A stretch of 64,000 nucleotides of DNA from contig OZ241831.1 of assembly GCA_965202585.1 (NCBI GenBank), forward strand, positions 14,818,001 to 14,882,000, in the 5' to 3' direction. The position numbers were made by a program, and so were the translations under genes. The stretch is from Thalia democratica. Taxonomy: Eukaryota. Below the pieces are notes generated by a model. The model had not been told where the DNA came from. It did not search any database and saw only the letters and a program-made list of their open reading frames with translations. Shown in pieces: positions 1-35,600 of the stretch (its first letter is position 1; each line of letters starts with the position of its first letter).

Positions 1-331
1 AAATGTATTCTTTATTCTCAGGTGTTTTGAGCACTTCTGTTGTAACAACAGCATTTAAATTTCTAACATGTTAACAATTAGCTAATGTGTTTGTTTGATT
101 TTTGTGTCTTTTCCTTTTAAAACAGGGTATTTACTTATTTGAAAACTGTACGTTGCTTTTGCACTCGTACTATCATAGCTGAACAGTTTTACGAAGCTTA
201 CTTTGAAGCAAATAAAAAAAAAATAAGTAAAGGCAAGAAAAACTTAAATTATTTGTTAGTTAGAACAAAGTTAGCTCTAAACATAAGAAACACTTAAGCA
301 AATAAGCTACAAGTTTCAGACAGTTCATTGG

Positions 332-338
332 TTTATAA
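332..338 (+). promoter_or_regulatory. TATA-like element upstream of 5S (present before all four copies)
   Basis: TTTATAA at -29..-23 from the 5S start, the usual position of the 5S upstream element. Confidence 0.5.
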
Positions 339-360: not shown

Positions 361-482
361 GCCTACGACCATACCACACTGAACACACCCCATCTCGTCC
401 GATCTGGGAAGTTAAAAAAGTGTCGGGCTTAAAGGTTAGTACTTAGATGGGTGACCGCTTGGGAATACCGCGTGCCGTAGGC
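361..482 (+). rRNA. 5S: 5S rRNA gene, aberrant 122-nt form (variant or pseudogene), copy 1
   Basis: Begins GCCTACGACCATACCAC, contains GGTTAGTACTTAGATGGGTGACCGCTTGGGAATACC and ends GTAGGC followed by TTTT. A TATA-like TTTATAA lies at -29..-23. It is 4 nt longer than the standard eukaryotic 5S. Confidence 0.88.
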
Positions 483-486
483 TTTT
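483..486 (+). terminator. Pol III terminator T-run of 5S (present after all four copies)
   Basis: TTTT directly follows GTAGGC, with a second T-run just after. Confidence 0.7.
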
Positions 487-3400
487 ATTTTCAAGCACTT
501 ATTTGTTGGATTTATTCTTCATACTTATTATGAAAGTTTCTAGTTTATCTTAAACATTTTTCAATAATAAATGACACACTAACTAGACTGTCATTTAGTT
601 GTAGACTTATTTTGTCTGTTGCTTTCATTTTGCTATTTATATAAAAGCCATAACTTTATTTCTTAAAAGCGTTTCGTTCTGCTCTAGACTTTTAACAAAT
701 ATAACTTGAAATAAACAGTTGCAGTAGTTTTTAGTTATCAAGTTGTCTCATACACAGTCTTCAATAAAGTTACAAAGCTGTTTACTTCTTTTCCTTTGCA
801 TAATGTTTCAGCTATTGGTTTTTTTACGCGTTGATGTTTTATGTTAAAAATCCATAAGCAACTAAGTTTAATAAAACAAGTCTAAGATTTGTAAAAAAAA
901 AATTCAACTTTGCTATTCATGACAGTTGTACTGAAATTGAATGCTTTTTGGTCGTTTTTTTTCTTTAGAACAATCACTGTTGTTTACATTTATTTATTTT
1001 TGAAAATACATTTTGATAAGCATGATCAGTATAATTTTCATGAATAAACCTCTACTGTTCAAGTATTTTTTAAAATAATACGAAATTTATTAAAACTAAC
1101 TGTTTTATTTTCATTCCATAATGAAATTACTTTTTATAGTGACGTAGAACAAGTTTTAAAAATAAAGTTTAGTATTTATTAAATTAAAAAAAAAGTCTAC
1201 GAAGTAAGCATAATTGAGAATTTTTTTTTTGTCTAAATAAAGAAGTTAACAAGAAAAAGCCTTTGGACAACACGTTTAAGTTAGTTGAAGCTTTTTATGA
1301 AACATCAAATTACAACTAGTTAACAAAACTTATTCCACGATTTAGGCAATACTTTCAAAACATAACTAGCTCTCTTATTAAAAGTTGCTTAGAATGTCCA
1401 GTAAAAGTACAAAGGCAATAGTAAGTATGCATATCTAGGTGACAAAAGAAAAGACAGAAAAAATATTATTTAGAAGTAAAATGTGTCATTCAACTAGCTC
1501 TAACTCTTACTTTTGATCTTTTACCACCACAAAGTTGGTTGAGTTGCACATTTTTGTTGTTTAGTTAAAGCTTGTTTAACACTGCTTAGTAGACTTTAAA
1601 GCTGGTTAAATAAGCTGGTTGTCCTGATTACATTAGATTAACTTGATAAAGCTATAAGCAATGCTAGATCAACTAAAAGATGTAAGCTTTTTAAAGTTAT
1701 AGATTCGAAATGTTCTTTTTCGTTCATGTTGTGATGCATATATGTTGTTTTTTGTTTATGTATTTATGAGTTGTAATGCATGTTTTAAATGTGTTTTAGT
1801 TAAAGTTATTTTCTGAAACGATACAACATAAATTAGACCCAAAGCTAAACTAATTTTCAACTTGATAAATCTGTGAACAATTTGAGTTCAATAAAAAGCT
1901 TTGTAAAAAGAATTCGGTTGTAATACATGATGGTTGTTGTACTGAAATTGCAGTTTTGTTGATTTTTTTATTTTGGTTTGAACAGCTTCTGTTGTTAATT
2001 GTATTTTAAACTGTTTTACTTAGTTTGAGTTGCATTGTAATAAAAAGAAATAATAAATTTTAGAAACTACTGGTTTATTAGATTGTAATTGTTAATATCC
2101 AAAGTTAAGTTTGTTTTATTATAATTTAATGTATTATTTTCATTTAAAATCTAATACTTTTTACAGTGACGTAGAACAGTATTTTTTAAATAAACTAAAT
2201 ACTTTTTCAATTTTACAAAAAGAAGTATACAAAATAAGCATAACGGGAATAAGTTTTGTTTAAAGAAAGAAGTTTACAAGAAAATCTTATGGACACAAAA
2301 ATCAAGTTAGTTGAAGCTTTCTGCGAAACGTATATTTATTTGTAATGTAACAGACTTAAGCAATGGTTTTTAAATACAACTAGCTCCCTCCTCAAAAGTA
2401 GTTTAAAATGTCATGTAAGAGAACAAAAACAATTGTAAATACAAGTATGTGACAAAAAGTTAAAACACAAAAGTATAAGTTAGAAGTAAACTGTTTTATA
2501 CAAACATTCTAACTCACCTTTTACCAGCACAAAAAACATTAAGTTTGGTTCGTTTTTGTCGTCTAGTTAGAGCTTGTTTAATGCTGCTTAGTGGACATTG
2601 ATATCTGGTTGAATCAGTTGGTGGTCCTTATCACTTTAGACTTATAACAGAAATGACTATAGACTGTAAAAGTCGTTTTAAGTCATCAAGTTGTCTCACA
2701 TATAGTTGTAACAAGTAATACAAATGAGTGGTGACAAGCTGTTACTTCTTTTCCTTTCAGCTTAAAAATTGAGTTCTTTCATGTATTCGACTAATTAAGC
2801 AATCAAAAACAAACTAAATAGATGTCAGCTTTGTAAAATAAAAGTTTTAATGATAAGCTTTCATCAACTATTTCAGCTATTTTTGTTTTGGTAAATCGCG
2901 TACTTGTTTATAGTGTTGTTTTTCTTTGAACAATCGATGTTGTTTACATTTATGTATTTTAATGTATGATTTTTAAATTACTATGCATGTTTTTAATTGT
3001 TAGTTGTAATTAAACTATATTTTTTGTGAAACAAATATTGTTTGTTGTTAACAATTGAAAACATACTTTGTTGATAAACCAAAGTAAGTTTTATTCTTAT
3101 TACTATTTAAGTGTACTATTTTCATTGAAAAATATAAATAGTTTTTAAAGTGACGTAGCGTAACTTTTTTTAATAAGTTAAAAAACAAATAATTATTGAA
3201 TGTTTAAGAAAAGTGCACAAAGTAAGAACGAATAAGATAGAGTTCTTAGAAAAAAAAAGATATCAAGAAGAAAAAGACATCCAAGTTAGTTAATTATGTT
3301 AAGCATTCAATTACAGTAGTTGTTACATCAAGTTGTCTAACACCTAGTCTAAACAAGTAACTTTACCATGAAAATAATAAAACAAGCATTTTTTAACCGT

Positions 3401-4081: not shown

Positions 4082-4441
4082 TTATTTTGAGCTGGTGTAC
4101 TTGGTAACAGCTTTAGTTCCCTCTGAAACTGCGTGCTTTGACAACTCGCCGGGGAGCAAGAGCCTGACAGCAGTTTGAATTTCGCGGCTGCTCACAGTTG
4201 ACCTCTTGTTGTAATGAGCCAAACGTGAAGCCTCTGCTGCAATGCGCTCGAAGATGTCGTTGACAAATGAGTTCATGATTCCCATCGCCTTGCTGGAAAT
4301 TCCGGTGTCGGGGTGCACTTGCTTCAAAACTTTGTACACGTAGATGCCAAAGCTTTCTTTGTGCCTCCTCCTTCGCTTCTTCTTGCCGTCGACCGGGGTG
4401 GTCTTGGCTACTGACTTCTTCGCGCCTTTGGTTGCGGTCAT
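4082..4441 (-). CDS. H2B: Histone H2B, unit 1
   Basis: 119 aa with [26 protein letters not shown] and [13 protein letters not shown]; TATA box upstream and stem-loop downstream. Confidence 0.98.
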
Positions 4442-4472
4442 GATGATGTGTGAACTTCAGTCTCGGCGCCAG

Positions 4473-4480
4473 CTTATATA
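4473..4480 (-). promoter_or_regulatory. TATA box of H2B
   Basis: TATATAAG on the minus strand, 32-39 nt upstream of the ATG. Confidence 0.8.
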
Positions 4481-4489
4481 CTGAAAGTT

Positions 4490-4501
4490 TATGCAAATTA
4501 G
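4490..4501. promoter_or_regulatory. Octamer-containing 12-mer in the H2B promoter
   Basis: TATGCAAATTAG, the reverse complement of CTAATTTGCATA; it contains ATGCAAAT. Confidence 0.75.
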
Positions 4502-4570
4502 CATTTCCGTACGCGAACGACAGCCTCTCTCATTTTATGATTCTCTCGTTTGTCGTAAATATTTTTAGGT

Positions 4571-4586
4571 GGTCCTGAAAAGGACC
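4571..4586 (-). terminator. Histone 3' stem-loop of H2A (all units)
   Basis: Minus strand GGTCCT-TTTC-AGGACC followed by ACC. Confidence 0.95.
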
Positions 4587-4600
4587 TGGTTTGTTTTAAC

Positions 4601-4981
4601 TTAGGCTGATTTTTTTGAAGCGGTCTTCTTGGGCAATAATACTGCCTGGATGTTTGGAAGAACACCTCCTTGAGCAATAGTGACGCCGCCGAGAAGTTTG
4701 TTCAACTCTTCGTCGTTGCGGATAGCTAGTTGCAAATGGCGGGGAATGATCCTGCTTTTCTTGTTGTCACGAGCAGCGTTACCGGCAAGCTCGAGCACTT
4801 CTGCGCTCAAATACTCGAGAACGGCAGCCAGATAAACTGGAGCACCAGCTCCGACTCTTTGGCTGTAGTTGCCAGTGCGCAACAGGCGGTGCACGCGACC
4901 GACTGGAAACTGCAGTCCTGCACGAGAAGACCTGCTCTTCGGCTTAGATTTGAGTTTTGATCCTTTACCACGTCCCGACAT
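4601..4981 (-). CDS. H2A: Histone H2A, unit 1
   Basis: 126 aa from MSGRGK with [12 protein letters not shown] and [11 protein letters not shown]. The start is trimmed from the ORF track's GTG at 5017. Confidence 0.98.
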
Positions 4982-5059
4982 CTTGTTGTTCGAATGATTG
5001 TGCCAAGATGCTCGCACAGCTCTGTATAAAACTCAAACCTAACCGCGTCGAACGAACAA

Positions 5060-5071
5060 CTAATTTGCATA
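5060..5071. promoter_or_regulatory. Octamer-containing 12-mer in the H2A promoter
   Basis: CTAATTTGCATA. The nearby TATA-like sequence (5024-5031) reads TTTTATAC on the gene strand, which is the consensus TATAAAA inverted. Confidence 0.75.
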
Positions 5072-5144
5072 TGTCGTAGCTGCTCTTTAATCTTGTCAAA
5101 ATGTTTGTTCAGCAGTGTTGAAGAAATTTGATTTTGAAATGGGT

Positions 5145-5160
5145 GGTCCTAAAAAGGACC
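5145..5160 (-). terminator. Histone 3' stem-loop of H4 (all units)
   Basis: Minus strand GGTCCT-TTTT-AGGACC followed by ACCCA. Confidence 0.95.
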
Positions 5161-5175
5161 GAGTTTGCTAAATGT

Positions 5176-5520
<345 letters not shown>

Positions 5521-5521
5521 T

Positions 5522-5529
5522 TATTTATA
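5522..5529 (-). promoter_or_regulatory. TATA box of H4
   Basis: TATAAATA on the minus strand, 35-42 nt upstream of the ATG. Confidence 0.8.
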
Positions 5530-5561
5530 AGCTGTTACGGACGCGTACGGTTACTACTAAA

Positions 5562-5573
5562 CTAATTTGCATA
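5562..5573. promoter_or_regulatory. Octamer-containing 12-mer in the H4 promoter
   Basis: CTAATTTGCATA. Confidence 0.75.
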
Positions 5574-5645
5574 CTCAGAAAAGTCTCTAACTTACATTCT
5601 TTCGTTTGGTTTATTTTTTCTCACTATCAAACAAAGTTTAAAAGT

Positions 5646-5661
5646 GGCCCTGAAAAGGACC
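5646..5661 (-). terminator. Histone 3' stem-loop of H3 (all units)
   Basis: Minus strand GGTCCT-TTTC-AGGGCC, with one G-U pair. Confidence 0.93.
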
Positions 5662-5669
5662 GGTTTTAG

Positions 5670-6215
<546 letters not shown>

Positions 6216-6243
6216 TCATGTTTTGTTAATATTTTGATTGAGT

Positions 6244-6259
6244 GGTCCTGAAAAGGACC
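6244..6259 (-). terminator. Histone 3' stem-loop of H1 (all units)
   Basis: Minus strand GGTCCT-TTTC-AGGACC followed by AC. Confidence 0.95.
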
Positions 6260-6276
6260 TTGGGTAAAAGAACAAC

Positions 6277-6864
6277 TTATTTTTTACAGCTCTTCTTGGT
6301 ACTTGCCTTCTTAGATGCTTTTTTGGCTACCGGCTTCTTCTTGGTTACTTTCTTCTTCTTGCTTGCAGCTTTTTTAGATGCTGCTTTCTTAGGAGCACAC
6401 TTTTTAGCAGGTCGCTTTTTGGCTGCTGGTTTTTTCGCTGCCTTCTTGGGAGCACACTTCTTTACTCGTTTCTTTGCTGCGGCCTTCTTTACTGCTGGCT
6501 TTTTAGCTACTTTTTTTGTCCTCTTCTTGGGACCAGCAGCTGGCATTGGAGCAAGCTTGAACGAGCCGGAAGCGCCTTTTCCAGTAGTCTGGAGAAAAGA
6601 ACCTTTGGTCACGCCGCTGGTAAGTGCTCTCTTCAAGTGAGAATTAGAAGCTGAGAGGTCAAGCTTGTAGGTGTCCGCGATATATTTTTGTATCTTCTGG
6701 CGGGATGTACCTTTTCGTTCCTTCATTGCTCCCAGGGCAGAGCTAATCATCTCCCTGTAAGTCGGGTGTTCTGCCTTCTTGGCGCTTGGTCTCTTGGAAG
6801 ACCTGGCCTTGGCTGCGGCCGCCGCCGCTGCTACTGCTGGTGCTGCTACTGCTGTGGTAGACAT
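6277..6864 (-). CDS. H1: Linker histone H1, unit 1 (195 aa)
   Basis: Winged-helix globular domain from HPTYREMI to GKGASGSFKL, a Lys/Ala/Pro-rich tail and a downstream stem-loop. Confidence 0.96.
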   Translation of the reverse strand: MSTTAVAAPAVAAAAAAAKARSSKRPSAKKAEHPTYREMISSALGAMKERKGTSRQKIQKYIADTYKLDLSASNSHLKRALTSGVTKGSFLQTTGKGASGSFKLAPMPAAGPKKRTKKVAKKPAVKKAAAKKRVKKCAPKKAAKKPAAKKRPAKKCAPKKAASKKAASKKKKVTKKKPVAKKASKKASTKKSCKK

Positions 6865-8550: not shown

Positions 8551-8672
8551 GCCTACGACCATACCACACTGAACACACCCCATCTCGTCCGATCTGGGAA
8601 GTTAAAAAAGTGTCGGGCTTAAAGGTTAGTACTTAGATGGGTGACCGCTTGGGAATACCGCGTGCCGTAGGC
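8551..8672 (+). rRNA. 5S: 5S rRNA gene, aberrant 122-nt form, copy 2
   Basis: Identical to 361-482. Confidence 0.88.
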
Positions 8673-11600
8673 TTTTATTTTCAAGCACTTATTTGTTGGA
8701 TTTATTCTTCATACTTATTATGAAAGTTTGTAGTTTATCTTAAACATTTTTCAATAATAAATGACACACTAACTAGACTGTCATTTAGTTGTAGACTTAT
8801 TTTGTCTGTTGCTTTCATTTTGCTATTTATATAAAAGCCATAACTTTATTTCTTAAAAGCGTTTCGTTCTGCTCTAGACTTTTAACAAATATAACTTGAA
8901 ATAAACAGTTGCAGTAGTTTTTAGTTATCAAGTTGTCTCATACACAGTCTTCAATAAAGTTACAAAGCTGTTTACTTCTTTTCCTTTGCATAATGTTTCA
9001 GCTATTGGTTTTTTTACGCGTTGATGTTTTATGTTAAAAATCCATAAGCAACTAAGTTTAATAAAACAAGTCTAAGATTTGTAAAAAAAAAATTCAACTT
9101 TGCTATTCATGACAGTTGTACTGAAATTGAATGCTTTTTGGTCGTTTTTTTTCTTTAGAACAATCACTGTTGTTTACATTTATTTATTTTTGAAAATACA
9201 TTTTGATAAGCATGATCAGTATAATTTTCATGAATAAACCTCTACTGTTCAAGTATTTTTTAAAATAATACGAAATTTATTAAAACTAACTGTTTTATTT
9301 TCATTCCATAATGAAATTACTTTTTATAGTGACGTAGAACAAGTTTTAAAAATAAAGTTTAGTATTTATTAAATTAAAAAAAAAGTCTACGAAGTAAGCA
9401 TAATTGAGAATTTTTTTTTTGTCTAAATAAAGAAGTTAACAAGAAAAAGCCTTTGGACAACACGTTTAAGTTAGTTGAAGCTTTTTATGAAACATCAAAT
9501 TACAACTAGTTAACAAAACTTATTTCACGATTTAGGCAATACTTTCAAAACATAACTAGCTCTCTTACTAAAAGTTGCTTAGAATGTCCAGTAAAAGTAC
9601 AAAGGCAATAGTAAGTATGCATATCTAGGTGACAAAAGAAAAGACAGAACAAATATTATTTAGAAGTAAAATGTGTCATTCAACTAGCTCTAACTCTTAC
9701 TTTTGATCTTTTACCACCACAAAGTTGGTTGAGTTGCACATTTTTGTTGTTTAGTTAAAGCTTGTTTAACACTGCTTAGTAGACTTTAAAGCTGGTTAAA
9801 TAAACTGGTTGTCCTGATTACATTAGATTAACTTGATAAAGCTATAAGCAATGCTAGATCAACTAAAAGATGTAAGCTTTTTAAAGTTATAGATTCGAAA
9901 TGTTCTTTTTCGTTCATGTTGTGATGCATATATGTTGTTTTTTGTTTATGTATTTATGAGTTGTAATGCATGTTTTAAATGTGTTTTAGTTAAAGTTATT
10001 TTCTGAAACGATACAACATAAATTAGACCCAAAGCTAAACTAATTTTCAACTTGATAAATCTGTGAACAATTTGAGTTCAATAAAAAGCTTTGTAAAAAG
10101 AATTCGGTTGTAATACATGATGGTTGTTGTACTGAAATTGCAGTTTTGTTGATTTTTTTATTTTGGTTTGAACAGCTTCTGTTGTTAATTGTATTTTAAA
10201 CTGTTTTACTTAGTTTGAGTTGCATTGTAATAAAAAGAAATAATAAATTTTAGAAACTACTGGTTTATTAGATTGTAATTGTTAATATCCAAAGTTAAGT
10301 TTGTTTTATTATAATTTAATGTATTATTTTCATTTAAAATCTAATACTTTTTACAGTGACGTAGAACAGTATTTTTTAAATAAACTAAATACTTTTTCAA
10401 TTTTACAAAAAGAAGTATACAAAATAAGCATAACGGGAATAAGTTTTGTTTAAAGAAAGAAGTTTACAAGAAAATCTTATGGACACAAAAATCAAGTTAG
10501 TTGAAGCTTTCTGCGAAACGTATATTTATTTGTAATGTAACAGACTTAAGCAATGGTTTTTAAATACAACTAGCTCCCTCCTCAAAAGTAGTTTAAAATG
10601 TCATGTAAGAGAACAAAAACAATTGTAAATACAAGTATGTGACAAAAAGTTAAAACACAAAAGTATAAGTTAGAAGTAAACTGTTTTATACAAACATTCT
10701 AACTCACCTTTTACCAGCACAAAAAACATTAAGTTTGGTTCGTTTTTGTCGTCTAGTTAGAGCTTGCTTAATGCTGCTTAGTGGACATTGATATCTGGTT
10801 GAATCAGTTGGTGGTCCTTATCACTTTAGACTTATAACAGAAATGACTATAGACTGTAAAAGTCGTTTTAAGTCATCAAGTTGTCTCACATATAGTTGTA
10901 ACAAGTAATACAAATGAGTGGTGACAAGCTGTTACTTCTTTTCCTTTCAGCTTAAAAATTGAGTTCTTTCATGTTTTCGACTAGTTAAGCAATCAAAAAC
11001 AAACTAAATAGATGTCAGCTTTGTAAAATAAAAGTTTTAATGATAAGCTTTCATCAACTATTTCAGCTATTTTTGTTTTGGTAAATCGCGTACTTGTTTA
11101 TAGTGTTGTTTTTCTTTGAACAATCGATGTTGTTTACATTTATGTATTTTAATGTATGATTTTTAAATTACTATGCATGTTTTTAATCGTGTTTTAGTTG
11201 TAATTAAACTATATTTTTTGTGAAACAAATATTGTTTGTTGTTAACAATTGAAAACATACTTTGTTGATAAACCAAAGTAAGTTTTATTCTTATTACTAT
11301 TTAAGTGTACTATTTTCATTGAAAAATATAAATAGTTTTTAAAGTGACGTAGCGTAACTTTTTTTAATAAGTTAAAATACAAATAATTATTGAATGTTTA
11401 AGAAAAGTGCACAAAGTAAGAACGAATAAGATAGAGTTCTTAGAAAAAAAAGATATCAAGAAGAAAAAGACATCCAAGTTAGTTAATTATGTTAAGCATT
11501 CAATTACAGTAGTTGTTACATCAAGTTGTCTAACACCTAGTCTAAACAAGTAACTTTACCATGAAAATAATAAAACAAGCATTTTTTAACCTTGTTTAAG

Positions 11601-16740: not shown

Positions 16741-16862
16741 GCCTACGACCATACCACACTGAACACACCCCATCTCGTCCGATCTGGGAAGTTAAAAAAG
16801 TGTCGGGCTTAAAGGTTAGTACTTAGATGGGTGACCGCTTGGGAATACCGCGTGCCGTAGGC
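16741..16862 (+). rRNA. 5S: 5S rRNA gene, aberrant 122-nt form, copy 3
   Basis: Identical to 361-482. Confidence 0.88.
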
Positions 16863-19800
16863 TTTTATTTTCAAGCACTTATTTGTTGGATTTATTCTTC
16901 ATACTTATTATGAAAGTTTGTAGTTTATCTTAAACATTTTTCAATAATAAATGACACACTAACTAGACTGTCATTTAGTTGTAGACTTATTTTGTCTGTT
17001 GCTTTCATTTTGCTATTTATATAAAAGCCATAACTTTATTTCTTAAAAGCGTTTCGTTCTGCTCTAGACTTTTAACAAATATAACTTGAAATAAACAGTT
17101 GCAGTAGTTTTTAGTTATCAAGTTGTCTCATACACAGTCTTCAATAAAGTTACAAAGCTGTTTACTTCTTTTCCTTTGCATAATGTTTCAGCTATTGGTT
17201 TTTTTACGCGTTGATGTTTTATGTTAAAAATCCATAAGCAACTAAGTTTAATAAAACAAGTCTAAGATTTGTAAAAAAAAAATTCAACTTTGCTATTCAT
17301 GACAGTTGTACTGAAATTGAATGCTTTTTGGTCGTTTTTTTTCTTTAGAACAATCACTGTTGTTTACATTTATTTATTTTTGAAAATACATTTTGATAAG
17401 CATGATCAGTATAATTTTCATGAATAAACCTCTACTGTTCAAGTATTTTTTAAAATAATACGAAATTTATTAAAACTAACTGTTTTATTTTCATTCCATA
17501 ATGAAATTACTTTTTATAGTGACGTAGAACAAGTTTTAAAAATAAAGTTTAGTATTTATTAAATTAAAAAAAAAGTCTACGAAGTAAGCATAATTGAGAA
17601 TTTTTTTTTTGTCTAAATAAAGAAGTTAACAAGAAAAAGCCTTTGGACAACACGTTTAAGTTAGTTGAAGCTTTTTATGAAACATCAAATTACAACTAGT
17701 TAACAAAACTTATTTCACGATTTAGGCAATACTTTCAAAACATAACTAGCTCTCTTACTAAAAGTTGCTTAGAATGTCCAGTAAAAGTACAAAGGCAATA
17801 GTAAGTATGCATATCTAGGTGACAAAAGAAAAGACAGAACAAATATTATTTAGAAGTAAAATGTGTCATTCAACTAGCTCTAACTCTTACTTTTGATCTT
17901 TTACCACCACAAAGTTGGTTGAGTTGCACATTTTTGTTGTTTAGTTAAAGCTTGTTTAACACTGCTTAGTAGACTTTAAAGCTGGTTAAATAAACTGGTT
18001 GTCCTGATTACATTAGATTAACTTGATAAAGCTATAAGCAATGCTAGATCAACTAAAAGATGTAAGCTTTTTAAAGTTATAGATTCGAAATGTTCTTTTT
18101 CGTTCATGTTGTGATGCATATATGTTGTTTTTTGTTTATGTATTTATGAGTTGTAATGCATGTTTTAAATGTGTTTTAGTTAAAGTTATTTTCTGAAACG
18201 ATACAACATAAATTAGACCCAAAGCTAAACTAATTTTCAACTTGATAAATCTGTGAACAATTTGAGTTCAATAAAAAGCTTTGTAAAAAGAATTCGGTTG
18301 TAATACATGATGGTTGTTGTACTGAAATTGCAGTTTTGTTGATTTTTTTATTTTGGTTTGAACAGCTTCTGTTGTTAATTGTATTTTAAACTGTTTTACT
18401 TAGTTTGAGTTGCATTGTAATAAAAAGAAATAATAAATTTTAGAAACTACTGGTTTATTAGATTGTAATTGTTAATATCCAAAGTTAAGTTTGTTTTATT
18501 ATAATTTAATGTATTATTTTCATTTAAAATCTAATACTTTTTACAGTGACGTAGAACAGTATTTTTTAAATAAACTAAATACTTTTTCAATTTTACAAAA
18601 AGAAGTATACAAAATAAGCATAACGGGAATAAGTTTTGTTTAAAGAAAGAAGTTTACAAGAAAATCTTATGGACACAAAAATCAAGTTAGTTGAAGCTTT
18701 CTGCGAAACGTATATTTATTTGTAATGTAACAGACTTAAGCAATGGTTTTTAAATACAACTAGCTCCCTCCTCAAAAGTAGTTTAAAATGTCATGTAAGA
18801 GAACAAAAACAATTGTAAATACAAGTATGTGACAAAAAGTTAAAACACAAAAGTATAAGTTAGAAGTAAACTGTTTTATACAAACATTCTAACTCACCTT
18901 TTACCAGCACAAAAAACATTAAGTTTGGTTCGTTTTTGTCGTCTAGTTAGAGCTTGCTTAATGCTGCTTAGTGGACATTGATATCTGGTTGAATCAGTTG
19001 GTGGTCCTTATCACTTTAGACTTATAACAGAAATGACTATAGACTGTAAAAGTCGTTTTAAGTCATCAAGTTGTCTCACATATAGTTGTAACAAGTAATA
19101 CAAATGAGTGGTGACAAGCTGTTACTTCTTTTCCTTTCAGCTTAAAAATTGAGTTCTTTCATGTTTTCGACTAGTTAAGCAATCAAAAACAAACTAAATA
19201 GATGTCAGCTTTGTAAAATAAAAGTTTTAATGATAAGCTTTCATCAACTATTTCAGCTATTTTTGTTTTGGTAAATCGCGTACTTGTTTATAGTGTTGTT
19301 TTTCTTTGAACAATCGATGTTGTTTACATTTATGTATTTTAATGTATGATTTTTAAATTACTATGCATGTTTTTAATCGTGTTTTAGTTGTAATTAAACT
19401 ATATTTTTTGTGAAACAAATATTGTTTGTTGTTAACAATTGAAAACATACTTTGTTGATAAACCAAAGTAAGTTTTATTCTTATTACTATTTAAGTGTAC
19501 TATTTTCATTGAAAAATATAAATAGTTTTTAAAGTGACGTAGCGTAACTTTTTTTAATAAGTTAAAATACAAATAATTATTGAATGTTTAAGAAAAGTGC
19601 ACAAAGTAAGAACGAATAAGATAGAGTTCTTAGAAAAAAAAGATATCAAGAAGAAAAAGACATCCAAGTTAGTTAATTATGTTAAGCATTCAATTACAGT
19701 AGTTGTTACATCAAGTTGTCTAACACCTAGTCTAAACAAGTAACTTTACCATGAAAATAATAAAACAAGCATTTTTTAACCTTGTTTAAGCTAATGAGTT

Positions 19801-23219: not shown

Positions 23220-25164
23220 TTTGTATGTATTTTAAAGCAACCGAAACAATACTTTCAGTAGTTACTGACTGTGACGAATTGACTGTTGAGCAGTTTTACT
23301 TTGTGAAGTACCTTTTACTGATTAATACGAGCATTAGCATGTGAGTTTAAAGCGCATATGCTCATAAAAGCATAGTTATTTTTTTACGAACGTCAAAAAC
23401 ATTCCAGTGACAAAGAAACCAGACTTAGCCTGGTCGGAAACAGAGTTTTTTTTAAAGCTTAGCTTTAAAGGTCAAGAAAAACAGTCTAAAAGTTACAGCA
23501 CACCTCTGCATTTAATGATATAAACCTCAAATGAAACAAAATATATTACTACACATCCGGTTTAGTTTTCTTCAGCTGCAAACTTAAAACTGTAAGATTT
23601 TAGACAAGCACAAGTATTTTTTTCCACTTCAAGCTTAAGTTAAGTTTTATTATTTTAATTTCATTCGGTTTTGTCAATTGTAAAACCCATGAAGTATGTT
23701 TAACTTGATTACAACTTTAACTGCGCTGGTTAGTAAAAAGTAATTCATAAACAAACACAAGTATTTAATTTATGATACTTTACAAGTTATCATTACTTTA
23801 AGTAAACTTATATTGAAAATGGCAGTACTAAACCACCTAAAAAAACTTAAGTACATAAGTTTTGAATTTGTTCTTCTACATACTAGTAACTTACCTTTTC
23901 AAAATTGTTCTGAACAGTAGCCATACAAAACTTGTTAAAAAGCTAGAAACTAATGTTTAACTTGTTATATAAAACAGTCCCAACTAGTTACTAGTATTTC
24001 ACAGTTAGAAAAATTTGAAACAACTTTTTAAAACTATTACACAGTTGTTTTGATTTTTTAACAACGTTTTATTTGTTATACTCGAAGCTGAACTAAGAAC
24101 TTTTTCTTTGTAGATTTGATGAAAAGAAAGCGAACAAATGGATTTGATCGTAACTTTCCAAAACGAGACGAAATAACTTACACTTAAATGAATATCAGTA
24201 CTGTTCACTTATGTTCAAAGAAAAGGACCGAAATTTCAATATGAAGTTTAAAAGAGTTGCTTATTTTGAGACGAAAAACTTTACTTTAAAAAAGAGGTTA
24301 GGCTAATTTTAAAAGTAGTATCAAGTAAGTAACGATCATAAAAAAATATCAATGTTTCATAAGTAATTTGAAAAACTAGATTGGATAAACTTTTGTTTAC
24401 ATTCAGTACTCATAAACTTGCGATGTGTTTAAGAAAGTCTATTTGACAATCATACAGTTAAAGTTTATTTTTCTAAAATTTGTTCATCATGAATTGAAAC
24501 TATATGAGCAACTAAATTAAATCTTGTTCAATGCATATTACAAAACATCATTAAATGTTCAAAGCAACAAAAGTACAGTTCAAAAATGACTGCATAATGA
24601 TAGAAGTGTTTATGTTTACTAAGTGAAGATTTGTTTAAATAAACTTTAATTGATTTACTGCTTAAAGTAGTTTCTAAGTGTAATAAAAACTAGATTCATT
24701 ACAATGTTCTGCACAATTTAGACAGTTGACTAAATGTTTTGCTGTGGTATATTTTAAAAAAGGTTGTTAAATCAACTATAACTTGATATAAATGTAATTT
24801 CAAAATGTATTCTTTATTCTCAGGTATTTTGAGCACTTCTGTTGTAACAACAGCATTTAAATTTCTAACATGTTAACAATTAGCTAATGTGTTTGTTTGA
24901 TTTTTGTGTCTTTTCCTTTTAAAACAGGGTATTTACTTATTTGAAAACTGTACATTGCTTTTGCACTCGTACTATCATAGCTGAACAGTTTTACGAAGCT
25001 TACTTTGAAGCAAATAAAAAAAAAGAATAAGTAAAGGCAAGAAAAAGTTAAATTATTTGTTAGTTAGAACAAAGTGAGCTCTAAACATAAGAAACACTTA
25101 AGCAAATAAGCTACAAGTTTCAGACAGCTCATTGGTTTATAACAACTTTTTATCGTTTTCGAAC

Positions 25165-25286
25165 GCCTACGACCATACCACACTGAACACACCCCATCTC
25201 GTCCGATCTGGGAAGTTAAAAAAGTGTCGGGCTTAAAGGTTAGTACTTAGATGGGTGACCGCTTGGGAATACCGCGTGCCGTAGGC
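25165..25286 (+). rRNA. 5S: 5S rRNA gene, aberrant 122-nt form, copy 4 (type B spacer)
   Basis: Identical to 361-482 despite diverged flanks. Confidence 0.88.
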
Positions 25287-28200
25287 TTTTACTTTCAAGC
25301 TCTTGTTTGTTGGATTAATTCTTCATACTTATTATGAAAGTTTCTAGTTTATCTTAAACATTTTTCAATAATAAATGACACATTAACTAGACTGTCATTT
25401 AGTTGTAGACTTATTTTGTCTGTTGCTTTCATTTTGCTATTTACATAAAAGCCATAACTTTATTTTTTATAAGCGTTTCGTTCTGCTCTAGACTTTTAAC
25501 AAATATAACTTGAAATAAACAGTAGTTTTTAGTTATCAAGTTGTCTCATACACAGTCTTCAATAAAGTTACAAAGCTGTTTACTTCTTTTCCTTTGCATA
25601 ATGTTTCAGCTATTGGTTTTTTTACGCGTTGATTATGTTAAAAATCCATAAGCAACTAAGTTTTATAAAACAAGTCTAAGATTTGTAAAAAAAATTCAAC
25701 TTTGCTATTCATGACAGTTGTACTGAAATTGAATGCTTTTTGGTCGTTTTTTTTTCTTTAGAACAATCACTGTTGTTTACATTTATTTATTTTTGAAAAT
25801 ACATTTTGATAAGCATGATCAGTATAATTTTCATGAATAAACCTCTACTGTTCAAGTATTTTTAAAAACAATACGAAATTTATTAAAACTAACTGTTTTA
25901 TTTTCATTCCATAAATGAAATTACTTTTTATAGTGACGTAGAACAAGTTTTAAAAATTAAGTTTAGTATTTATTAAATTAAAAAAAAGTCTACGAAGTAA
26001 GCATAATTGAGAATTTTTTTTGTCTAAATAAAGAAGTTAACAAGAAAAAGCCTTTGGACAACACGTTTAAGTTAGTTGAAGCTTTTTATGAAACATCAAA
26101 TTACAACTAGTTTACAAAACTTATTCCACGATTTAGGCAACACTTTCAAAACATAACTAGCTCTCTTATTAAAAGTTGCTTAGAATTTCCAGTAAAAGTA
26201 CAAAGGCAATAGTAAGTATGCATAACTAGGTGACAAAAGAAAAGACAGAAAAAATATTATTTAGAAGTAAAATGTGTCATTCAACTAGCTCTAACTCTTA
26301 CTTTTGATCTTTTACCACCACAAAGTTGGTTGAGTTGCACATTTTTGTTGTTTAGTTAAAGCTTGTTTAACACTGCTTAGTAGACTTTAAAGCTGGTTAA
26401 ATAAACTGGTTGTCCTGATTACATTAGATTAACTTGATAAAGCTATAAGCAATGCTAGATCAACTAAAAGATGTAAGCTTTTTAAAGTTATAGATTCGAA
26501 ATGTTCTTTTTCGTTCATGTTGTGATGCACATATGTTGTTTTTTGTTTATGTATTTATGAGTTGTAATGCATGTTTTAAATGTGTTTTAGTTAAAGTTAT
26601 TTTCTGAAACGATACAACATAAATTAGACCCAAAGCTAAACTAATTTTTAACTTGATAAATCTGTGAACAATTTGAGTTCAATAAAAAGCTTTGTAAAAA
26701 GAATTCGGTTGTAATACATGATGGTTGTTGTACTGAAATTGCAGTTTTGTTGATTTTTTTATTTTGGTTTGAACAGCTTCTGTTGTTAACTTATGTTGCA
26801 TTGTAATAAAAAGAAATAATAAGTTTTAGAAACTACTGGTTTATTAGATTGTAATTGTTAATATCCAAAGCTAAGTTTGTTTTATTATAATTTAATGTAT
26901 TATTTTCATTTAAAATCTAATACATTTTACAGTGACGTAGAACAGTATTTTTTAAATAAACTAAATACTTTTTCAATTTTACAAAAGAAGTATACAAAAT
27001 AAGCATAACGGGAATAAGTTTTGTTTAAAGAAAGAAGTTTACAAGAAAATCTTATGGACACAAAAATCAAGTTAGTTGAAGCTTTCTGCGAAACGTATAT
27101 TTATTTGTAATGTAACAGACTTAAGCAATGGTTTTTAAATGCAACTAGCTCCCTCCTCAAAAGTAGTTTAAAATGTCATGTAAGAGAACAAAAACAATTG
27201 TAAATACAAGTATGTGACAAAAAGTTAAAACACAAAAGTATAAGTTAGAAGTAAACTGTTTTATACAAACATTCTAACTTACCTTTTACCAGCACAAAAA
27301 ACATTAAGTTTGGTTCGTTTTTGTCGTCTAGTTAGAGCTTGTTTAATGCTGCTTAGTGGACATTGATATCTGGTTGAATCAGTTGGTGGTCCTTATCACT
27401 TTAGACTTATAACAGAAATAACTATAGACTGTAACAGTCGTTTTAAGTCATCAAGTTGTCTCACATATAGTTGTAACAAGTAATACAAATGAGTGGTGAC
27501 AAGCTGTTACTTCTTTTCCTTTCAGCTTATAAATTGAGTTCTTTCATGTATTCGACTAGTTAAGCAATCAAAAACAAACTAAATAGATGTCAGCTTTGTA
27601 AAATAAAAGTTTTAATGATAAGCTTTCATCAATTATTTCAGCTATTTTTGTTTTGGTAAATCGCGTACTTGTTTATAGTGTTGTTTTTCTTTGAACAATC
27701 GATGTTGTTTACATTTATGTATTTTAATGTATGATTTTTAAATTACTATGCATGTTTTTAATTTTAGTTGTAATTAAACTATATTTTTTGTGAAACAAAT
27801 ATTGTTTGTTGTTAACAATTGAAAACATACTTTGTTGATAAACCAAAGTAAGTTTTATTCTTATTACTATTTAAGTGTACTATTTTCATTGAAAAATATA
27901 ACTAGTTTTTAAAGTGACGTAGCGTAACTTTTTTAAATAAGTTAAAAAACAAATAATTATTGAATGTTTAAGAAAAGTCCACAAAGTAAGAACGAATAAG
28001 ATAGAGTTCTTAGAAAAAAAAGATATCAAGAAGAAAAAGACATCCAAGTTAGTTAATTATGTTAAGCATTCAATTACAGTAGGCAATAAATTAAGGATTA
28101 TAGCAGTGATCACACTAGTTTACATCGCAAAAGTTAGATCAAAAATAAAGTAAAAGTAGAGAAATCACAGCAAGCTTAACTGTTCAATTAATAATGGAAA

Positions 28201-29870
28201 GCGATAAAATATAGTTTGGAAGTAAACAGTGTTGTTCAGAGTTCTTTGATCCTTTATCATAACAAAGTAGATTTAGTATGTAAATTTGTGTCATTGAGTT
28301 TAGTACACATTAGAAGCTTGCATCAATGACTGGTGATCCACGTAAGCTTTAGACTTATGGAAAATACAAAGAAAAAACAAATGTTTTTTGGAGTTGTCTC
28401 ATATACAGTATAAAAAAGAGATCAAGTTGTTCATTTTTTCTTTTGTATCATGTTTTTATGTGTCGACGTTTTTGTTTGATAGAGCCACAAACAATTTGAG
28501 TTCAACGAAACAAGTTTAAATATTTGTAAATAGAAATATTTCAACTGTACTCTTAAACTATTGTTGTACTGAAACTGTATGTTTGTTTTGAACAGTCGCT
28601 GCTGTATACATTAATGCATTGTACAACTTTCAATCTGCTTTTTATGGTTTCAGTTGCATTCTAACTAACAACACTAGTATACTTAAAAAATTAAACCTCA
28701 GTTTAATTGTTATCTTTGACTAAAGTGTTTTTGATATCAATACAAATTCAAGTTTTCTTCTCATTATAATCAACTGAAATTTGAATTTTAAAATTTAACT
28801 AATTTTTCAGTGACATGGTATTATTTTAGATATTTCATTTATAAAACCTATCTTGACATTAAAAATAACATTGACTGTTTGAAAAACTTGTCCACAAAGT
28901 AAGCATGAATAAGAATAAATTTTGTTTAATATACCTATTTAAAAACATTTTTACCTAACATTCAAATACTAGTAAGAAAGGAAAACAGATAAATATTATC
29001 ATTTAGAAGTAAAATGTTTAGATACATTAGTAACTGGTTAAATCAGTTGGTGGTCCTTATTATTTTAGATTTATAACCAACATAACTTAGAACAAACAGT
29101 TAGAGTTACTTTAGGTCATCAAGTTGTCTAACACCTAGTCTAAACAAGTAACTTTACCATGAAAATAATAAAACAAGCATTTTTTAACCGTGTTTAAGCT
29201 AATGAATTGGTTTGTATCATAGGGTGATGTTTTGGCTTGAAATGATATCTTAAATAAGCTAAATAGATGTCAGCCTTGTAGGTGGGAATACTTAAATGTG
29301 TTTGAAATTCACATTTGTTATCTTTTGTTCTGAACTTTTATTTCTATTTATATACTTATAACTTTTTAAAACATTTTACATGGTTTCAACTGCATTTAAG
29401 TTGATAAAAAGAAGACGTTTAAAAGTTAAACCTTTGTTGTGTTGCTGATAATCAACAACAACTTAAAAATGTAACAAAAACTAAGGTTTTTTTTTGTTAT
29501 AAGTTGAGTATACGTTACTGTATTATCTTTTTTTAAACACTTATTTACTGAATGTTTTAACAGAAATTCAACAAATGAACAAGAAGTTGTATAGAAAAAA
29601 AAAGTTCACGGACAACGTATTGAAGTTAGTTAAATCCTTTTTTACAGATACAACTGTTTTTTCAAATTAGACTTATGCAATGGTAACCATAAGATTAAAA
29701 CTTGAAAGTACGACAAATTTTAAATCAAACAACTAAAGTGTTTGATCTTTTAATTCTTATAACAACCAGTTTGTTTGTACAATTATCAATTTGTGGCTTG
29801 TACTTTAAGTAGATATCAATAGCCGGTTTTGTTCAAATGGTGGTCCTAAAAAGGACCGGTTGTTGAGCAT

Positions 29871-32648: not shown

Positions 32649-35600
32649 TTTGTATGTATTTTAAAGCAACCGAGACAATACTTTTAGTAGTTACTGACTG
32701 TGACGAATTGACTGTTGAGCAGTTTTACTTTGTGAAGTACCTTTTACTGATTGTTACGAGCATTAGCATGTGAGTTTAAAGCGCATATGCTCATAAAAGC
32801 ATAGTTATTTTTTTACGAACGTCAAAAACATTCCAGTAACAAAGAAACCAGACTTAGCCTGGTCGGAAACAGAGTTTTTTTTAAAGCTTAGCTTTAAAGG
32901 TCCAGAAAAACAGTCTAAAAGTTACAGCACACCTCTGCATATAATGATATAAACCTCAAATGAAACAAAATATACTACTACACATCAGGTTTAGTTTTCT
33001 TCAGCTGCAAACTTAAAACTGTAAGATTTTAGACAAGCACAAGTGTTTTTTTCCACTTCAAGCTTAAGTTAAGTTTTATTATTTTAATTTCATTCGGTTT
33101 TGTCAATTGTAAAACCCATGAAGTATGTTTAACTTGATTACAACTTTAATTGTGCTGGTTAGTAAAAAGTAATTCATAAACAAACACAAGTATTTAATTT
33201 ATGACACTTTACAAGTTATCATTACTTTAAGTATACTTATATTGAAAATGGCAGTACTAAACCACCTAAAAAAACTTAAGTACATATGTTTTGAATTTGT
33301 TCTTCCACATACTAGTAACTTATCTTTTCAAAAATGTTCTGAACAGTAGCCATACAAAACTTGTTAAAAAGCTAGAAACTAATGTTTAACAAAGTTTGTT
33401 ATATAAAACAGTCCCAACTAGTTACTAGTATTTCACAGTTAGAAAAATTTGAAACAACTTTTTAAAACTGTTACACAGTTGTTTAGATTTTTTAACAACG
33501 TTTTATTTGTTATACTCAAAGCTGAACTAAGAACTTTTTCTTTGTAGATTTCATGAAAAGAAAGCGAACAAATGGATTTGATCGTAACTTTCCAAAACAA
33601 GACGAAATAACTTACACTTAAATGAATATCAGTACTGTTCACTTATGTTCAAAGAAAAGGACCGAAATTTCAATATGAAGTTTAAAAGAGTTGCTTATTT
33701 TGAGACGAAAAACTTTACTTAAAAAAAGAGGTTAGGCTAATTTTAAAAGTAGTATCAAGTAAGTAACGATCATAAAAAAAAATATCAGTGTTTCATAACT
33801 AATTTGAAAAACTAGATTGGATAAACTTTTTTTTACATTCAGTACTCATAAACTTGCGATGTGTTTAAGAAAGTCTATTTGACAATCATTTGTTGGATTA
33901 GTTCTTCATACTTATTATGAAAGTTTCTAGTTTATCTTAAACATTTTCAATAATAAATGACACACTAACTAGACTGTCATTTAGTTGTAGACTTATTTTG
34001 TCTGTTGCTTTCATTTTGCTATTTATATAAAAGCCATAACTTTATTTTTTATAAGCGTTTCGTTCTGCTCTAGACTTTTAACAAATATTACTTGAAATAA
34101 ACAGTTGCAGTAGTTTTTAGTTATCAAGTTGTCTCATACACAGTCTTCAATAAAGTTACAAAGCTGTTTACTTCTTTTCCTTTGCATAATGTTTCAGCTA
34201 TTGGTTTTTTTACGCGTTGATGTTTTATGTTAAAAATCCATAAGCAACTAAGTTTAATAAAACAAGTCTAAGATTTGTAAAAAAATTCAACTTTGCTATT
34301 CATGACAGTTGTACTGAAATTGAATGCTTTTTGGTCGTTTTTTTTCTTTAGAACAATCACTGTTGTTTACATTTATTTATGTTTGAAAATACATTTTGAT
34401 AAGCATGATCAGTATAATTTTCATGAATAAACCTCTACTGTTCAAGTATTTTTAAAAATAAAACGAAATTTATTAAAACTAACTGTTTTATTTTCATTCC
34501 ATAATGAAATTACTTTTTATAGTGACGTAGAACAAGTTTTAAAAATTAAGTTTAGTATTTATTAAATTAAAAAAAAGTCTACGAAGTAAGCATGGTTGAG
34601 AATTTTTTTTTGTCTAAATAAAGAAGTTAACAAGAAAAAGCCTTTGGACAACACGTTTAAGTTAGTTGAAGCTTTTTATGAAACATCAAATTACAACTAG
34701 TTTACAAAACTTATTCCACGATTTAGGCAATACTTTCAAAACATAAAACTAGCTCTCTTATCAAAAGTTGCTTAGAATGTCCAGTAAAAGTACAAAGGCA
34801 ATAGTAAGTATGCATAACTAGGTGACAAAAGAAAAGACAGAAAAAATATTATTTAGAAGTAAAATGTGTCATTCAACTAGCTCTAACTCTTACTTTTGAT
34901 CCTTTACCACCACAAAGTTGGTTGAGTTGCACATTTTTGTTGTTTGTTTAACACTGCTTAGTAGACTTTAAAGCTGGTTAAATAAACTGGTTGTCCTGAT
35001 TACATTAGATTAACTTGATAAAGCTATAAGTAATGCTAGATCAACTAAAAGATGTAAGCTTTTTAAAGTTTTAATAGATTCGAAATGTTCTTTTTCGTTC
35101 ATGTTGTGATGCATATATGTTGTTTTTTGTTTATGTATTTATGAGTTGTAATGCATGTTTTAAATGTGTTTTAGTTAAAGTTATTTTCTGAAACGATACA
35201 ACATAAATTAGACCCAAAGCTAAACTAATTTTCAACTTGATAAATCTGTGAACAATTTGAGTTGAATAAAAAGCTTTTTAAAAAGAATTCGGTTGTAATA
35301 CATGATGGTTGTTGTACTGAAATTGCAGTTTTGTTGATTTTTTTATTTTGGTTTGAACAGCTTCTGTTGTTAACTGTATTTTAAACTGTTTTATTTAGTT
35401 TGAGTTGCATTGTAATAAAAAGAAATAATACATTTTAGAAACTACTGGTTTATTAGATTGTAATTGTTAATATCCAAAGTTAATTTTGTTTTATTATAAT
35501 TTAATGTATTATTTTCATATAAAATCTAATACTTTTTACAGTGACGTAGAACAGTATTTTTTAAATAAACTAAATACTTTTTTAATTTTACAAAAAGAAG

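Follow-up and report, generated by a model that had tools for sequence, protein, structure and literature searches.

Why does a tandem histone array of Thalia democratica carry a 5S rRNA-like gene that bears two fixed lesions and is nevertheless less variable than the DNA around it? The window analysed here, a stretch of 64,000 nucleotides, consists of tandem histone units in which H2B, H2A, H4, H3 and H1 lie on the minus strand and the 5S-like gene, where present, lies on the plus strand. The initial annotation had offered three answers: a dead 5S gene, a lineage-specific expanded 5S rRNA, or a 5S-derived element kept for another role. From the evidence set out below, we consider that the element is probably what is left of a histone-linked 5S rRNA gene that once worked, was disabled recently and is now decaying.

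The gene is present in window units 1–4 only, units 5–8 having lost it. The copies and the quintet that hosts the first of them are located as follows.

361–483, plus strand: histone-linked 5S variant, copy 1 (RF00001 84.1 bits, model positions 1–120; 123 nt including the first terminator T).
8551–8673, plus strand: 5S variant, copy 2 (RF00001 match; same sequence as copy 1).
16741–16863, plus strand: 5S variant, copy 3 (RF00001 match; same sequence as copy 1).
25165–25287, plus strand: 5S variant, copy 4 (same sequence as copy 1), in the unit with the fullest spacer, comprising segment B, segment C and the 5S.
4082–6864, minus strand: histone quintet of unit 1 (H2B, H2A, H4, H3, H1), the host repeat of the 5S.

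Rfam and local BLAST searches were run on sub-ranges of the window other than the H4 stretch. In the Rfam covariance search, each of the four copies covers the full RF00001 model at 84.1 bits (E 1.9e-16), above the family threshold of 38 bits yet 28 bits under the intact 5S genes of the same genome (112 bits). These matches, together with sequence comparison, confirmed that the copies beginning at 361, 8551, 16741 and 25165 are identical, as the initial annotation had claimed, and its tally for copies 1 and 4 was reproduced: three differences in 120 bp upstream, none in the gene and five in 105 bp downstream. The host units themselves are less uniform, with lengths of 8190 bp for units 1–3 and ~8.4–8.6 kb for units 4–8. 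The H3 gene of unit 1 has a frameshift (window 5670–5710) that replaces its last ~10 residues, and those of units 6 and 7 (~48919 and ~57500) lack ~26 nt, leaving no H3 ORF of at least 100 aa, while H3 is normal in units 2–5. With H3 broken in three of the eight window units, selection on single units of this array is weak.

Differences of the variant were scored against the genome's own intact 5S (119 nt, 112 bits), whose numbering is the same as that of Xenopus through nt 100. The Xenopus-type internal control region comprises box A (+50–64), the intermediate element (IE, +67–72) and box C (+80–97), and because the numbering agrees, the lesions map to box A (nt 56–57) and the IE (nt 68–69). 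Both of the lesions described in the initial annotation stand on this comparison, and the following features were assigned around copy 1.

414–419, plus strand: box A lesion, a six-A run against AAGCA in the intact gene (G56C57 replaced by AAA, +1 nt).
429–433, plus strand: IE/helix V lesion, the dinucleotide G68T69 replaced by TTAAA (+3 nt).
444–461, plus strand: box C equivalent, corresponding to nt 80–97 of the intact gene and of the same sequence as in the rDNA-linked 5S.
330–338, plus strand: TATA-like motif GGTTTATAA at −31 to −23, which occurs at the same distance before the intact rDNA-linked 5S.
483–491, plus strand: T4-A-T4 run, Pol III terminator-like on reading of the sequence.
254–329, plus strand: upstream block, approximately −107 to −32, conserved between the C7 and C8 histone-linked 5S copies.

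In the RF00001 alignment, the two lesions appear as an inserted A after the AAA of box A and as a 'uaa' insert in helix V. The former breaks the G21–C57 pair at the top of helix II; the latter breaks the third pair of helix V and leaves a 5×2 internal loop. Three further differences from the intact gene had escaped the initial annotation: G23T24 to AC, A106 to G, and a 3'-terminal C to T. The internal control region of the variant thus appears to combine a normal box C with an altered box A (nt 56–57, +1) and an altered IE (nt 68–69, +3). Its flanks are unrelated to those of the intact rDNA-linked gene apart from GGTTTATAA and the T-run terminator. The TATA-like element, box C and terminator, previously described as intact in the window, proved to be so on comparison with the intact 5S, and they are likewise intact in 20 of 20 main copies of the window's array (C7). 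Box A is a general Pol III element, whereas TFIIIA is bound by the IE and box C (PMC3123226). Under the Xenopus model of the internal control region, the lesions would be predicted to cripple TFIIIA/TFIIIC-dependent transcription and ribosome assembly. The conserved TATA-like motif near −30 suggests a reliance on upstream elements that could let the lesioned gene still be transcribed.

A genome-wide RF00001 search for canonical 5S elsewhere, a check proposed in the initial annotation, found intact 119-nt genes (112 bits) in 15.5-kb repeats, one of which carries 5S, 18S, 5.8S and 28S on a single strand. Each 45S rDNA unit holds two intact 5S genes, ~2.95 kb apart, upstream of 18S and on the same strand, and the rDNA-type 3' end is carried by ~536 5S copies genome-wide, giving a count of ~536 intact genes in rDNA. 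These fall into two subtypes, GAGTAC...GGCC (112 bits) and GAGCAC...GGCT (111.7 bits), with some units carrying the second subtype twice; examples are L051:425-543 and L087:131-249, from rDNA units on C258 and C26. Two solitary, dispersed copies of rDNA type were also seen. One (L089:173-291, C10:1.921 Mb) is nearly intact at 105 bits, and the other (L088:195-313, C4:50.638 Mb) is heavily mutated at 48 bits and illustrates what an old 5S pseudogene looks like in this genome. Location of 5S in the 45S rDNA intergenic spacer is reported for several taxa in passages of PMC8789306, PMC10138776 and PMC3692318. The intact genes found here resemble this L-type/NOR-5S arrangement, as outlined in those passages, in occupying the rDNA spacer upstream of 18S and sharing its strand; they differ from it in that two are present per unit and that they apparently form the main supply rather than an extra class.

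Could the variant be a working 5S rRNA in its own right, lineage-specific and expanded or stage-specific (for example, of oocyte type), that enters ribosomes? Its 84 bits against RF00001, its retention of 31 of 34 consensus pairs and its promoter-like and terminator signals speak for such a role, as does the occurrence in animals of two expressed 5S classes, an example being the oocyte-specific rDNA-linked 5S of turtles described in a passage of PMC8789306. Against it, threading on the Rfam consensus structure gave the variant −16.2 kcal/mol with its 31 pairs, compared with −24.8 kcal/mol and 33 pairs for the intact gene, a loss of 8.6 kcal/mol in stability. The variant also falls short of a five-helix fold with intact helix V and loop E, the top pair of helix II and the third pair of helix V being broken. 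The minimum free energy (MFE) z-score was −0.5, no better than for shuffled sequence, compared with −3.1 for the intact gene. MFE folding performs poorly on 5S, and even the intact gene did not yield the textbook shape by this method; we therefore placed weight on the consensus-structure energy.

Comparison among arrays bears on the same question. The histone-linked 5S genes form a separate lineage of 48–49 copies found in four places only: 21 copies in the window's array (C7:14.67–14.84 Mb), 14 at C8:46.2 Mb, 12 at C8:47.0 Mb and one on C1648. The census rested on two anchors, a 3' 22-mer and a 5' 30-mer with one mismatch allowed in each, and both returned the same set of copies. All 48–49 share A23, G106 and the 3' T, and none of those read is structurally intact. 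Counted by their H1 genes, there are at least 150 histone units, spread over a dozen arrays. Neither lineage anchor matched any of the more than 100 units in other arrays (C10, C8:54 Mb, C7:31 Mb, C167, C342), and no 5S was found in 3-kb stretches upstream of H1 taken from four of these anchor-negative arrays; arrays were sampled as 3-kb and 1.1-kb stretches. Two trivial origins for the copies were considered and set aside: an assembly artefact was rejected because the copies lie in units with distinct flanks, and a 5S-derived SINE because they occur only inside histone units.

The left-edge copy, L058, is informative about the history of this lineage. Its helix V reads GCGCGG opposite CCGCGT, where the rDNA type reads GCGTGG opposite CCACGT. 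This compensatory exchange of T-A for C-G shows that selection formerly acted on the fold in this lineage, which was thus once functional. Copies at the edge of an array usually escape homogenisation, so L058 preserves an older state. Like the main C7 copies it carries the box A lesion, but it has GCGCGG at the site where they carry TTAAA; the box A lesion is thus the older and TTAAA the younger. L058 has also acquired a scrambled loop E and two substitutions and has no TATA motif, and its homology to the upstream region begins at −107.

The C8 copies were damaged differently. Their box A is kept, but nt 64–71 are deleted (8 nt), and with these nucleotides the IE, the 5' strand of helix V and the end of helix II are gone; threaded on the Rfam consensus, this form keeps 26 pairs. 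The C8:46 Mb array has in addition a 1-nt deletion near nt 80 and a change of TATA to TATG. Since the sister arrays have lost the 5' strand of helix V and the edge copy differs again, no variant structure is conserved, and with ~536 intact 119-nt genes in rDNA and lesions that differ between histone arrays, we reject the proposal of a lineage-specific expanded 5S. A working variant 5S rRNA of any kind is, in our judgement, highly improbable. TTAAA, the 8-nt deletion and the scrambled loop E are three independent lesions within nt 64–82, a 19-nt stretch covering the 5' strand of helix V, loop E and the IE, while the rest of the gene is almost invariant. The chance of such clustering is ~0.02, a rough estimate rather than a formal test, and the cluster could reflect a mutational hotspot or selection. 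Every lesion enriches A/T, as expected from mutation pressure in a spacer of ~28% GC.

We also looked for the lineage in environmental sequence. Two scans of JGI metagenome contigs, one with the lineage-specific 3' part and one with the upstream block and the 5S head, returned no copy, and neither H1 nor two short ORFs that overlap the 5S region gave a record when looked up by exact sequence. A homologue search with H1 found many marine-metagenome relatives; in the parts searched of the related contigs L091–L098, most of which are too short to reach one, no 5S was found. One of these, the Tara Oceans contig L092, holds a related quintet (H1 88% identical) and a canonical histone 3' stem-loop at L092:3242-3287 (RF00032, 34.8 bits), and the 3.4 kb of it searched contained no 5S. 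Public runs matching the window stretch included marine metagenomes and three metatranscriptomes.

Beyond its point lesions, the gene has been removed outright from part of the window's array. The segments concerned, and the large insertions that also distinguish the units, are these.

24318–24553, plus strand: spacer segment B, 236 nt, kept only in the copy 4 unit (97% over 206 nt).
33752–33887, plus strand: deletion scar of unit 5, segment B joined to sequence 18 nt past the 5S end.
42363–42498, plus strand: deletion scar of unit 6, same deletion as in unit 5.
50945–51080, plus strand: deletion scar of unit 7, same deletion as in unit 5.
59526–59661, plus strand: deletion scar of unit 8, same deletion as in unit 5.
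28083–29116, 36698–37727, 45310–46339, 53891–54920 and 62472–63501: insertions of ~1.03 kb at unit position 3319/3326, which units 4–8 have and units 1–3 lack.

Units 5–8 and further units rightward hold 137 bp in place of the 736 bp of the common unit, and the piece left in these 5S-less units is the first ~137 nt of segment B. Their junction shows a 2-nt microhomology, with ~850 bp including the 5S missing. Segment C adjoins the 5S and is also present in arrays without it. As the copy 4 unit holds segment B together with the 5S, and segment C and the 5S are common to outgroup arrays, the ~850-bp deletion is the derived state; it is carried by at least eight tandem units, window units 5–8 among them. 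A second, independent deletion of 239 bp (−44 to +72 past the gene) occurs in one unit at C7:14.727 Mb. The 5S has been deleted from about a third of the units of the window's array, a further point against a working variant rRNA. Elsewhere in the spacer, a block at ~8960–9060 (unit 1 ~770–870), ~290–400 nt past the 5S, is 85–90% conserved between C7 and C8, and a 40–56-nt core of it (78–87% identical) recurs in sampled 5S-less arrays; the block could be a regulatory element of the histone arrays.

The pattern of variation among the surviving copies is the part of the evidence that fits decay least well. The initial annotation had taken substitution at the flank rate across many copies as the mark of an ordinary pseudogene, and this is not what we found: even after the lesions, variation is about four-fold lower in the gene than in the flanks. 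The 20 C7 copies that carry both lesions have one variable site in the 123-nt gene and 97 in 1667 nt of well-aligned flank. Of 1423 windows of 123 nt lying wholly in flank, only 5 (0.35%) are as invariant as the gene, and the longest invariant run in these copies, −28 to +108, coincides with it. Corrected for base composition, the expectation is 8.4 variable sites against the one observed (P = 0.002). Among the 26 C8 copies that share the 8-nt deletion, there are four variable sites (five with the copy L064) against 12.3 expected (P ~0.006–0.015), and for C7 and C8 combined, 5–6 against ~21 (P ~1e-4). Variants within the gene are all singletons or doubletons, whereas those in the flanks reach 4:16 or 7:13. 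Between C7 and C8, outside the lesions, 1 of 104 gene sites differs compared with 62 of 242 in the flanks (Fisher 5e-10). Three technical or trivial sources of this contrast were assessed. Base composition is ruled out, as the correction raises the expected count; so is ascertainment bias, given that both anchors converge on one set of 48 copies and that including L064 contributes a single further variant; and conversion by the rDNA 5S genes is an unlikely source of the conservation, with no copy showing the rDNA-type states at nt 23 or 106.

Variation this low among copies already sharing their lesions counts against free drift, and hence against decay. It raises a second reading, in which the Pol III machinery still occupies the damaged copies, or they are still transcribed, and weak selection maintains them for some role outside the ribosome; TFIIIA would bind the intact box C and TBP/TFIIIB the TATA-like element at −30. 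The copies might then serve as a factor landing site or boundary in the histone locus, or yield a 5S-like RNA with the half that comprises helices I–III and binds uL18. The four-fold deficit arose in two independent lesion lineages, the variants within the gene are all rare, and the upstream block from −107 to −32 is common to the C7 and C8 arrays, all of which favours such a role. The intact box C, TATA-like motif and terminator of the 20 main copies speak for it as well and, like the clustering of lesions in nt 64–82, were counted against decay. A further point in its favour is that, across arrays, the lesions lie within nt 54–82, and nt 1–53 and 83–122 are nearly invariant. A corollary, to which we give limited credence, is that selection keeps nt 1–53 and 83–122, including box C, and that the lesions in nt 64–82 represent the switching off of ribosomal function. 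Set against continued binding are the two deletions of the gene in the window's array, one of them in at least eight units, the more than 100 units of other arrays that match neither anchor, the additional damage to the border of box C and to the TATA motif in the C8:46 Mb array, and the failure of any common RNA structure to survive across the lesion types. Overall, we regard a selected element that is still Pol III-bound or transcribed as unlikely.

The low variation could also be non-functional. If homogenisation had acted on the 5S segment more efficiently or at a later date, for example by gene conversion in short tracts centred on it, the gene would be dead and would have a younger common ancestor than its flanks. 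The trough is indeed narrow (−28 to +108 in C7) and is flanked on both sides by variants of older subfamilies at 4:16, and the excess of singletons within the gene fits a recent local sweep. Yet no conversion from the ~536 rDNA-type genes is seen, A23 and G106 being present in every copy, and G/C sites in the flanks vary more than A/T sites, so that GC-biased conversion offers no explanation. We know of no mechanism by which conversion tracts would come to be centred on the gene in each of two arrays, which also counts against this account. Local homogenisation is, on this balance, a distinctly unlikely cause.

We therefore return to decay as the preferred explanation. Eight observations lead to it: the intact paralogues, the separateness of the lineage, its former function, the differing lesions, the tolerated loss, the loss of fold stability, the A/T-enriching nature of the lesions and the weak selection on single units seen in the broken H3 genes. 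Among the options raised initially, the dead 5S is the best supported, given array-specific lesions acquired stepwise, two independent whole-gene deletions, the lack of any detected 5S in more than 100 other histone units and a destabilised fold. Of the features expected of a pseudogene, intact paralogues and tolerated loss are both present, while evolution at the flank rate is not observed. A long period of selection in the past, released recently and in parallel, can account for the contrast between gene and flanks across arrays, and the strong similarity outside the lesions would mainly reflect that history. With C7 and C8 nearly identical in the gene outside the lesions, decay requires that both sets of lesions be recent and nearly simultaneous. 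The deficit of variation within arrays arose after the lesions and is left over by the decay model.

The course of events we propose is as follows. The ancestor of one clade of histone arrays with 8–10-kb units (C7, C8 and C1648) would have carried a working 5S in each unit. With ~536 intact genes, two per 45S rDNA unit, providing the present 5S supply, the histone-linked copies would have become redundant and selection on them relaxed. Each array may then have fixed its own lesions through unequal crossing-over and concerted evolution. In the window's array, the replacement of GC by AAA in box A came first and TTAAA in the IE and helix V second; after both lesions, the whole gene was deleted in some units, and one such deletion was amplified to at least eight tandem units.

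Linkage of 5S to tandem histone quintets is known in Artemia, Mytilus and some snails, as reviewed in PMC13525598, which cites Andrews 1987, Perez-Garcia 2010 and Drouin & de Sa 1995 for it; the terms 'tunicate', 'Ciona', 'Oikopleura' and 'urochordat' do not occur in that review. As in those animals, the 5S lies here inside a tandem five-histone unit and is homogenised with it. Unlike in those animals, all linked copies are damaged while intact genes reside in rDNA, and the 5S is confined to one clade of arrays, from which it is disappearing one unit at a time. Variants and pseudogenes of 5S that evolve by a mixture of concerted and birth-and-death processes have been well described, pseudogenes being a normal outcome (PMC3123226), and variant classes and pseudogenes evolving in this manner are also treated in a passage of PMC3215682. 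Thalia resembles such systems in having several 5S classes per genome, some with mutated internal control regions that homogenisation has spread through arrays. It departs from them in the unusual completeness of its decay series, which runs from a compensatory pair through a box A lesion and an IE lesion to deletion, and from an ordinary 5S pseudogene in a gene body that varies about four times less than its flanks. The histone-linked 5S described here is a further case of the known histone-linked and pseudogene kinds of 5S; the present analysis contributes the sequence in which the changes occurred, the compensatory pair in helix V, both deletions and the statistically supported shortage of variation.

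For annotation, if these are ordinary pseudogenes, the copies should be left out of any tally of 5S genes, despite scores well over the Rfam threshold. The four-fold deficit of variation in copies that look dead raises the question of whether 5S-derived DNA is protected by bound Pol III machinery or through some other role. A compensated helix, a first lesion, a second lesion and deletions occur side by side in one genome, a series in which the death of redundant tandem genes under concerted evolution can be studied. For the organism itself, the genome catches a change of 5S locus part-way, with the histone-linked family being dismantled while the rDNA-linked family supplies the RNA.
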